NCBI GenBank assembly: GCA_964252035.1
Contig: OZ176217.1
Length of the DNA stretch: 64,000 nt
Origin: Podarcis erhardii
Taxonomy: Eukaryota
Strand: one strand, 5' to 3'
Shown here: one piece after another, positions 1-60,554 of the stretch
How the letters are laid out: every line of letters begins with the position of its first letter
Position numbering within the stretch: the stretch's first letter is position 1
Position numbers and translations under genes: made by a program
Notes under the pieces: generated by a model
The model's input: only the letters and a program-made list of their open reading frames with translations
What the model was told of the DNA's origin: nothing
Database searches by the model: none

Positions 1-129
1 AAGCTGGTCAAGGCCCTGTTGTCCCACCAATAAAATATGACTACCGCTTTGCTCTAGTGCAATGCCTTTTAATCTGGGCTGGCGCTGTCTTCCCTCCTTC
101 CCCTGCGCTTATAATTTAAACACAGTTAC

Positions 130-420
130 CTCCAGCCCCTCAACAATCTCTCTGATCTCTTCCTGCTTCTGCTGGGCTCTTTGGGTCTGACGACGCAGCT
201 CCTCCAGGCCCCGCTCATAGAAGTCGGAGCTGCATCTGATCTTGTCAAGCTTCTGCGTCGTGGACTCGTAGAGGTCACTCAGTGTGCTGGCAAACTGCAT
301 TACCCCATAGAAAAGAATGTTTACCTCCTGCAGAGCCGCGGGCTGCTGCTGGCCTGTGAGGATAGGGGCAAGCATGGCTGCAGAAGGCAGCAAGATACTC
401 AGGAATAGGAAAGTCAGCAT
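130..420 (-). CDS. ANGPTL8: Angiopoietin-like 8 (lipasin/betatrophin), coding exon 1 (97 aa); later exons lie left of the window
   Basis: ATG at 420 in good Kozak context (cagccATG); the ORF-track start at 435 is a TTG. Signal peptide MLTFLFLSILLPSAAMLA, then EVNILFYGVMQFASTLSDLY, which aligns without gaps to human ANGPTL8 EELTLLFHGTLQLGQALNGVY, then a coiled coil. Phase-0 donor GAG|GTAACT at 130/129 falls at the position equivalent to the end of human exon 1. Antisense in the DOCK6 intron before exon 15, as in mammals. Confidence 0.88.
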
Positions 421-470
421 GGCTGTGACTTGCAAGCCAATGGAAAAAACGAAGGAAGTAAGCCTGCCGC

Positions 471-476
471 TTTATA
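471..476 (-). promoter_or_regulatory. TATA box of ANGPTL8
   Basis: Minus strand reads CATATAAAG about 50 nt upstream of the ATG, implying a TSS near 445 and a short 5'UTR. Confidence 0.6.
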
Positions 477-1217
477 TGCAGAAGCGAGGGAGGGGTCTGA
501 TGGGGAAAGAGACGATTGAGCTGGACTGAGCAACCCACTCCAGCATTTAATGAGCCAGCAGTATTTTAATCCTGGGCTCTCATCCCACACTTAGCATGGG
601 CACAGAACTTCTGACCTGGGGCAACAGAGTTGCACAATGCTGGCAGATGGCAGCTTATTGCAGAGGTACCTAAAGGCTAACTTTGGATTCTGGCACCTCT
701 TAACGGTTGCAAGAGGTTGCGGGGAGGGGAAGGTGGCGTGTCTGTCCAAATGCTGGCTATGTTTATCCTGGCTGGGCTGTGGGATGGAGCAACGTGATGT
801 AATCCGCTGCCTCTTGGAGAGGGTGGCATGAAGGACTGGCGTGATGCAAAGACTTGATGCTCCAAAGGTCTCCTGCTCTTTTACCTTTATGGACTGAGCA
901 TGCTCTGCGCATATGGAACTCTGACCAACTGCGGGCAGAGAATGGGAGACCAGAGGGGCAGGAAATGGAGTAGGAGCTGTTGGTGGGCTGAAACTCTGAA
1001 CAGAACACATTTTAAGTTATCTGCATAGCCTGTGAAAATCCCTACTAAGTTGTACCTTAATCTTTGAGTGCAACTGATTCCCAGCAGGTGTACATTAATT
1101 TCTTTTGCAGATAAGGAAAAGGTGTTCTGGCAATCGCATCAGTTATGGGTCTCTCTGCCATGTACACATTTGCTGCCGCTCTCCCTCAGAACTGTAAAGA
1201 TTCCCCTTCTCTTGCAG

Positions 1218-60554
<59,337 letters not shown>

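Follow-up and report, generated by a model that had tools for sequence, protein, structure and literature searches.

The minus strand of the window (the whole stretch of 64,000 nucleotides of Podarcis erhardii DNA that was analysed) carries at 420..130 what we consider, with a probability of about 90%, to be the first coding exon of a lizard ANGPTL8 orthologue, lying antisense in the DOCK-C intron that precedes the first DHR-1 exon of a host gene that is most likely DOCK6. ANGPTL8 in squamates is already known to the databases: RefSeq and UniProt entries bear its name for over 100 fishes as well as for lungfish, coelacanth, newt, frogs, snakes and a lizard. Because the gene is already annotated and its nesting extends from teleosts to mammals, the finding is a correction to the literature and not a new gene, and what is of interest is the mismatch between database entries and the published record.

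Exon 1 and its relatives

The coding exon (130..420, minus strand), recognised from its sequence, translation, homology and the RNA contigs of a close relative, encodes a signal peptide, a conserved N-terminal motif and the start of a long helix. It comprises 97 codons, from the ATG at 420 to GGG CTG GAG, with gtaact following at the 130/129 boundary. This phase-0 splice donor after codon 97 (124..129, minus strand) is supported by the sequence, by breaks in the RNA contigs and by a boundary shared with relatives. The ATG stands in a good context, with a purine (G) at -3, and no other ATG lies between the TATA box and 420. A hydrophobic leader, MLTFLFLSILLPSAAMLAP, follows directly after the ATG and reads as a signal peptide on inspection; further along come AALQEVNILFYGVMQFASTLSDLYESTTQKLDKIR and then a charged, heptad-like stretch that runs up to the donor. 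The original prediction had described a signal peptide and a coiled coil ending at a minus-strand phase-0 donor, and both are seen in the sequence and translation of 420..130. Its placement of the exon directly 5' of a DOCK exon was likewise borne out, with the plus-strand exon at 1218-1335 beginning 797 nt from the ATG. The conserved motif, (D/E)VN(I/V)LxYGVxQF, presumably resembles SE1.

We compared the 97-residue product with 1.84 billion representative proteins using phmmer and obtained 35 matches at E≤1e-3, nearly all of them 100-330 aa long and every one aligned over the same N-terminal stretch. A word search carried by a 169-aa read-through ORF from a relative's genomic contig led to ANGPTL8 of the lacertid Zootoca vivipara, a 202-aa RefSeq entry named 'angiopoietin-like protein 8 isoform X1', and BLASTP against it gave a gap-free alignment with 83 of 97 residues identical (86%, E 2e-58). 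The only mammalian protein among the 35 phmmer matches was opossum ANGPTL8 (Monodelphis domestica; 31/80 identical, ~39%; E 1e-14 pairwise and 2e-8 library-wide), whose alignment is gap-free from A28 to E97. Columns A28, V33, L36, G39, Q42 and L75 are invariant across 16 aligned species, and the column of K57 holds K or R in 16/16 aligned vertebrates. No protein of ANGPTL3 or ANGPTL4 length (400-460 aa) appeared among the 35 matches at E≤1e-3, and this result, together with the Zootoca and opossum alignments, upholds the claim that a squamate carries an ANGPTL8 orthologue.

A different origin would place the exon in an ANGPTL3- or ANGPTL4-type gene, or in a copy of ANGPTL3 within DOCK7, with a fibrinogen-like domain encoded downstream. 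ANGPTL3 does sit in the equivalent intron of DOCK7 (PMC6371847), one frog member of the family is called 'angiopoietin-related protein 3-like' in RefSeq, and human DOCK7 slightly outscores DOCK6 in matches to the DHR-2 exons of the host. However, the closest full-length relatives are 184-221 aa long with three or four coding exons, and the Pfam fibrinogen domain was found in none of six full-length relatives, including those of Zootoca (202 aa) and python (206 aa). The list of 35 matches, with ANGPTL8 as its sole mammalian entry, also speaks against this origin, and the changes that human DOCK6 has made on its own weaken the ranking of DOCK scores as a guide to orthology. An ANGPTL3- or ANGPTL4-type origin is hardly credible on this evidence.

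Structure searches returned little beyond the coiled coil. Queried alone, the 97-aa sequence drew only weak coiled-coil noise from Pfam and the PDB, and a family-profile search of the PDB gave generic coiled coils and no ANGPTL structure. The Zootoca protein as modelled by AlphaFold (mean pLDDT 78) consists only of helices at residues 30-140 and 147-201, preceded by an unstructured leader with pLDDT below 55 at residues 1-24.

Gene structure, promoter and transcription

The window shares with Python, Anolis and Zootoca an exon 1 of 97 codons; in Astyanax the boundary follows codon 101, which is the aligned position. The coding exons of Zootoca correspond to residues 1-97, 98-154 and 155-202 (10001-10291, 11174-11344 and ~14729-14872 of L004), and those of Python to residues 1-97, 98-155 and 156 onward. 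Both Anolis carolinensis RefSeq models (162 and 190 aa; 10001-21069 of L003) are without the conserved third coding exon (KAH.QQQNLT...), and tblastn with the python exon found nothing within 10 kb downstream; the third coding exon of Anolis may be lost, diverged or further away. By analogy with Zootoca, exon 2 of P. erhardii is placed about 0.9 kb to the left of the window's first base. With exons 2-3(4) falling to the left of the window, the window speaks for the intactness of exon 1 only.

An alignment of the region 5' of the exon took in five sequences: the window, L001 (a relative at 98% identity), Zootoca, Anolis and Python. A TATA box, ATATAAA (471..477, minus strand), lies 52-57 nt upstream of the ATG and is conserved across squamates, with ATATAA invariant in the five-squamate alignment. 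Further upstream on the same strand, the block AAAATACTGCTGGCTCATTAA (547..567) consists mostly of columns invariant among lizards and python and may serve as a promoter element, and the block TTGTGCAACT (628..637) is conserved in the squamate alignment and fits what we take to be a C/EBP-type pattern, TKNNGNAAK. RNA contigs of the relative have 5' ends at 439, 444, 497 and 534. As such ends cannot fix a start site, the putative 5' UTR (421..445, minus strand) is drawn from the position of the TATA box.

No RNA runs were found on record for P. erhardii, and transcription was followed in four small runs (X1-X4) of a close relative (organism A), whose exon is about 96-97% alike, by comparison with window 1-3000. 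A 604-nt contig of X2, with a word depth of 66, fits 129-534 with 14 differences and continues for 198 nt beyond 129 that are absent from the window. Contigs of X4 (359 nt) and X3 (189 nt) also break at 129, with 197 and 22 further nt, respectively, absent from the window. Because contigs of all three runs leave the window at 129, the 130/129 donor is used in the relative's RNA, and the spliced transcript that had been anticipated from this donor is found to break exactly there. X1 yielded a low-depth contig (50-305) that runs through the donor and represents unspliced RNA or DNA. In X2, moreover, 1335 is spliced to 2045 across GT..AG ends, which gives exactly the host exon junction GQAMP|VIFGKSS, and it is this joint that identifies the runs as RNA, a status otherwise only guessed.

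Five squamates keep the frame of exon 1 open; its dN/dS is 0.61 in the comparison with Zootoca and 0.37-0.45 in those with Anolis and Python. The window and Zootoca are ~92% identical in the exon and in the intron and flanks alike; the exon thus diverges about as fast as the intron, which together with a dN/dS of 0.61 indicates that constraint between these two is weak. The exon might accordingly be read as a decaying relic, open in exon 1 while the rest of the gene is lost or broken, so that P. erhardii would make no functional protein. That only exon 1 lies in the window, that the dN/dS of 0.61 falls on the short Zootoca branch, and that the Anolis models stop short of a third coding exon are compatible with such decay. 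Against it stand the open frame and the conserved donor, TATA box and promoter blocks, as well as the donor-spliced contig in the close relative, whose word depth of 66 in X2 compares with 2.4 for the host-gene contig (contig depths are not reliable as a measure of expression level). Moreover, Zootoca, which is ~92% identical in neutral DNA, has a complete gene of 202 aa. We regard a relic as very improbable, and an ANGPTL8 gene whose first exon is spliced at 130/129 as the better reading.

The host DOCK gene

The exons that follow the nested gene on the plus strand belong to a DOCK-C gene. The first of them (1218..1335), which begins (R) and contains GQAMP, marks the start of DHR-1/C2; it is supported by the RNA joint, and the same exon adjoins the nested gene in Python and Anolis. 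The next exon (2045..2115) ends (K) and is supported by the RNA joint and by exon comparison, and a further exon (2420..2558), which begins (K), aligns to residues 617-663 of DOCK6 in the PDB with an E of 7e-19. The last coding exon (59151..59321) ends in PHSAHR and then a stop, so the window includes all of the host gene that follows the nested gene, down to its stop codon. In the 4.7 kb after the host stop codon, we found neither a neighbouring gene nor a CpG island. Within the host gene, positions 30590-30749 are 160 N, either an assembly gap or a mask.

Two further observations concern the introns of the host. A contig of X2 covers 888-1225 and another carries the 1335-2045 joint, so some plus-strand RNA of the relative holds at least 325 nt of the intron directly upstream of the exon at 1218-1335; either the intron was retained or DOCK has an internal start divergent from the ANGPTL8 promoter. 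Contigs of all four runs also pile up at 2806-3000, beside a low-complexity run at 2740-2805; their word depths range from 2e4 to 1e5, and they show many variants and loose ends. This segment is a very abundant dispersed, SINE-like repeat in a host intron.

Nesting antisense in a DOCK C/D-type gene was found in Zootoca, Anolis, Python, the frog Discoglossus, opossum and Astyanax. The first DHR-1 exon adjoins the nested gene in the window, Zootoca, Anolis and Python, and nesting alone recurs in the frog, the opossum and the teleost. The host protein models in these vertebrates are 2110-2139 aa long, except that of python, which has 1171 aa; the full-size models carry DOCK_C-D_N, DOCK-C2 and DHR-2, and the python model carries DOCK-C2 and TPR_DOCK9. 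In humans, ANGPTL8 lies in intron 14 of the 47 introns of DOCK6 and ANGPTL3 in intron 14 of DOCK7 (PMC6371847). The original prediction held that the exon occupies the same DOCK6 intron as in mammals. Its antisense position in a DOCK-C gene next to the first DHR-1 exon stands, and the choice of DOCK6 over DOCK7 is unproven at site counts of 5, 4 and 3 for DOCK6, DOCK7 and DOCK8.

These counts come from five host exons that were searched singly against the PDB, where DOCK6 is present at full length (9vm2) and DOCK7 and DOCK8 as DHR-2 domains. DOCK7 scored first throughout, DOCK6 was second for three exons, and DOCK8 edged out DOCK6 for two. At sites where the four sequences fall into two pairs (counted by eye over DHR-2 plus the C-terminal exon), the window pairs with DOCK6 at 5, with DOCK7 at 4 and with DOCK8 at 3, a star-like pattern that favours none of them. 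At most sites where human DOCK6 differs, the window, DOCK7 and DOCK8 agree, and the changes are therefore peculiar to mammalian DOCK6. With human DOCK6 altered at so many sites, the order of the scores is a poor guide to host orthology. Mammalian DOCK6 (9vm2 against the window's host exons in DHR-2, 52243-59318) looks fast-evolving, as does the ANGPTL8 nested in it.

ANGPTL8 might instead be nested in DOCK7 or another DOCK-C paralogue, in which case a shared intron with mammals would fail, and four-way site counts as close as these leave room for such a host. The host is nevertheless only ~88% identical to human DOCK7 over the 255 best-conserved residues, which we assume to be low for a DOCK7 orthologue. 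Orthology naming in RefSeq and Ensembl calls the nested gene ANGPTL8 in many species. The neighbourhood of human ANGPTL8 is conserved on anole chromosome 2 (PMC5237311), and the anole ANGPTL8 locus lies on the second chromosome record of the anole assembly, which we infer to be the same chromosome. A host other than DOCK6 is unlikely, and this indirect evidence makes DOCK6 the very probable one, short of proof.

Age of the gene and comparison with known systems

Databases already list the gene in many bony vertebrates, under several names. Entries called 'Angiopoietin-like protein 8' include those of Python bivittatus (UniProt), Liasis olivaceus, Monodelphis domestica, Protopterus annectens, Pleurodeles waltl, Discoglossus pictus, Amia ocellicauda, Astyanax mexicanus and Megalops (UniProt). 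The Latimeria member is an 'Uncharacterized protein ANGPTL8', the members from Anolis and Rhineura are still labelled 'uncharacterized', and a profile search retrieved more than 100 teleost RefSeq models called 'angptl8'. Whether databases annotate the gene in squamates had been left open beforehand; they do, and the Zootoca gene is already 'angiopoietin-like protein 8' in RefSeq. No bird, turtle or crocodilian protein was among the matches listed (35 from phmmer and the best 120 of 186 from the profile search), which did include squamates, amphibians, lungfish, coelacanth and fishes, and this may mean loss of ANGPTL8 in archosaurs and turtles.

We built a maximum-likelihood tree from 27 members of the ANGPTL8 family. 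Ray-finned and lobe-finned members are split (98/97), squamates group together (89/85), and the window joins Zootoca (100/99) next to the amphisbaenian Rhineura. As judged from these sequences, the branching order is that of the species, as a single-copy orthologue should show. By far the longest branch in the tree is that of opossum, at 2.1 against a median of 0.44 (about five times). Mammalian ANGPTL8 is thus fast-evolving, which may explain why searches seeded with mammalian proteins missed the others and why the gene was thought to be specific to mammals. Given orthologues from teleosts to squamates and the 98/97 split, ANGPTL8 clearly predates mammals and is at least as old as the last ancestor shared by ray-finned and lobe-finned vertebrates. 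The earlier inference that the gene is older than mammals was therefore right, too modest about where the gene is present, and not new.

The published record says otherwise. Reviews and primary papers from 2014 to 2024 describe ANGPTL8 as absent from fish, amphibians, reptiles and birds (PMC4284785, PMC5237311, PMC10475376, PMC11529983). The first of these, from 2014, reported no homologues in birds, amphibians or fish and linked the gene to homeothermy (PMC4284785); a 2017 paper found it absent from anole and fish despite conserved neighbours (PMC5237311); absence outside mammals was repeated in 2023 (PMC10475376); and a hypothesis has been built on absence in 'lower vertebrates' (PMC11529983). 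In some of these four papers the absence serves physiological arguments that connect ANGPTL8 with homeothermy or with a high turnover of lipase in the mammalian heart. Among the papers searched, none described ANGPTL8 from a non-mammal. The mammal-only statements are contradicted by the models now in RefSeq and UniProt.

In mammals, feeding induces ANGPTL8, which associates with ANGPTL3 and ANGPTL4 in complexes and modulates lipoprotein lipase (PMC7397750, PMC7526440). By analogy, lizard ANGPTL8 would be a secreted, all-helical protein of ~200 aa without a fibrinogen-like domain, whose long helix would pair with ANGPTL3 and/or ANGPTL4 and so tune lipoprotein lipase after feeding. The conserved stretch (D/E)VN(I/V)LxYGVxQF...Y..T..K/R would be the likely part in contact with the lipase or a partner. 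We tentatively suggest, at slightly less than even odds, that feeding-responsive lipoprotein lipase control of the ANGPTL3/8 type is ancestral to bony vertebrates and works in ectotherms, that the 'mammal-only' picture reflects a fast mammalian protein, and that the gene is perhaps lost or unrecognisable in birds, turtles and crocodilians. If true, an ancestral feeding-responsive switch would undercut hypotheses, such as that of PMC11529983, that start from a lack of the gene in 'lower vertebrates'. In practical terms, pythons and lizards, as ectotherms whose feeding cycles are extreme, are open to study of the ANGPTL3/4/8 system.

Among known systems, the paralogues ANGPTL3 and ANGPTL4 resemble the lizard gene in their signal peptide and N-terminal coiled coil, and their lipase-inhibitory SE1 region (PMC8478524) presumably has a counterpart in its conserved motif. 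They differ in their length of 400-460 aa and their C-terminal fibrinogen-like domain, and ANGPTL3 differs further in occupying the equivalent intron of DOCK7 (PMC6371847). Mammalian ANGPTL8 (also betatrophin, lipasin, RIFL or C19orf80) resembles the lizard family in its ~200 aa, signal peptide, N-terminal motif, long helix and lack of a fibrinogen-like domain, and resembles the lizard gene in having few exons and lying antisense in a DOCK-C gene, which in humans is intron 14 of DOCK6 (PMC6371847, PMC4284785). The human ANGPTL8 transcript has four exons (PMC4284785), whereas Zootoca isoform X1 has three coding exons. ANGPTL8 of Zootoca (P0039) is the same gene as that in the window, with which it shares the exon boundary, the promoter blocks and the host-gene neighbourhood.
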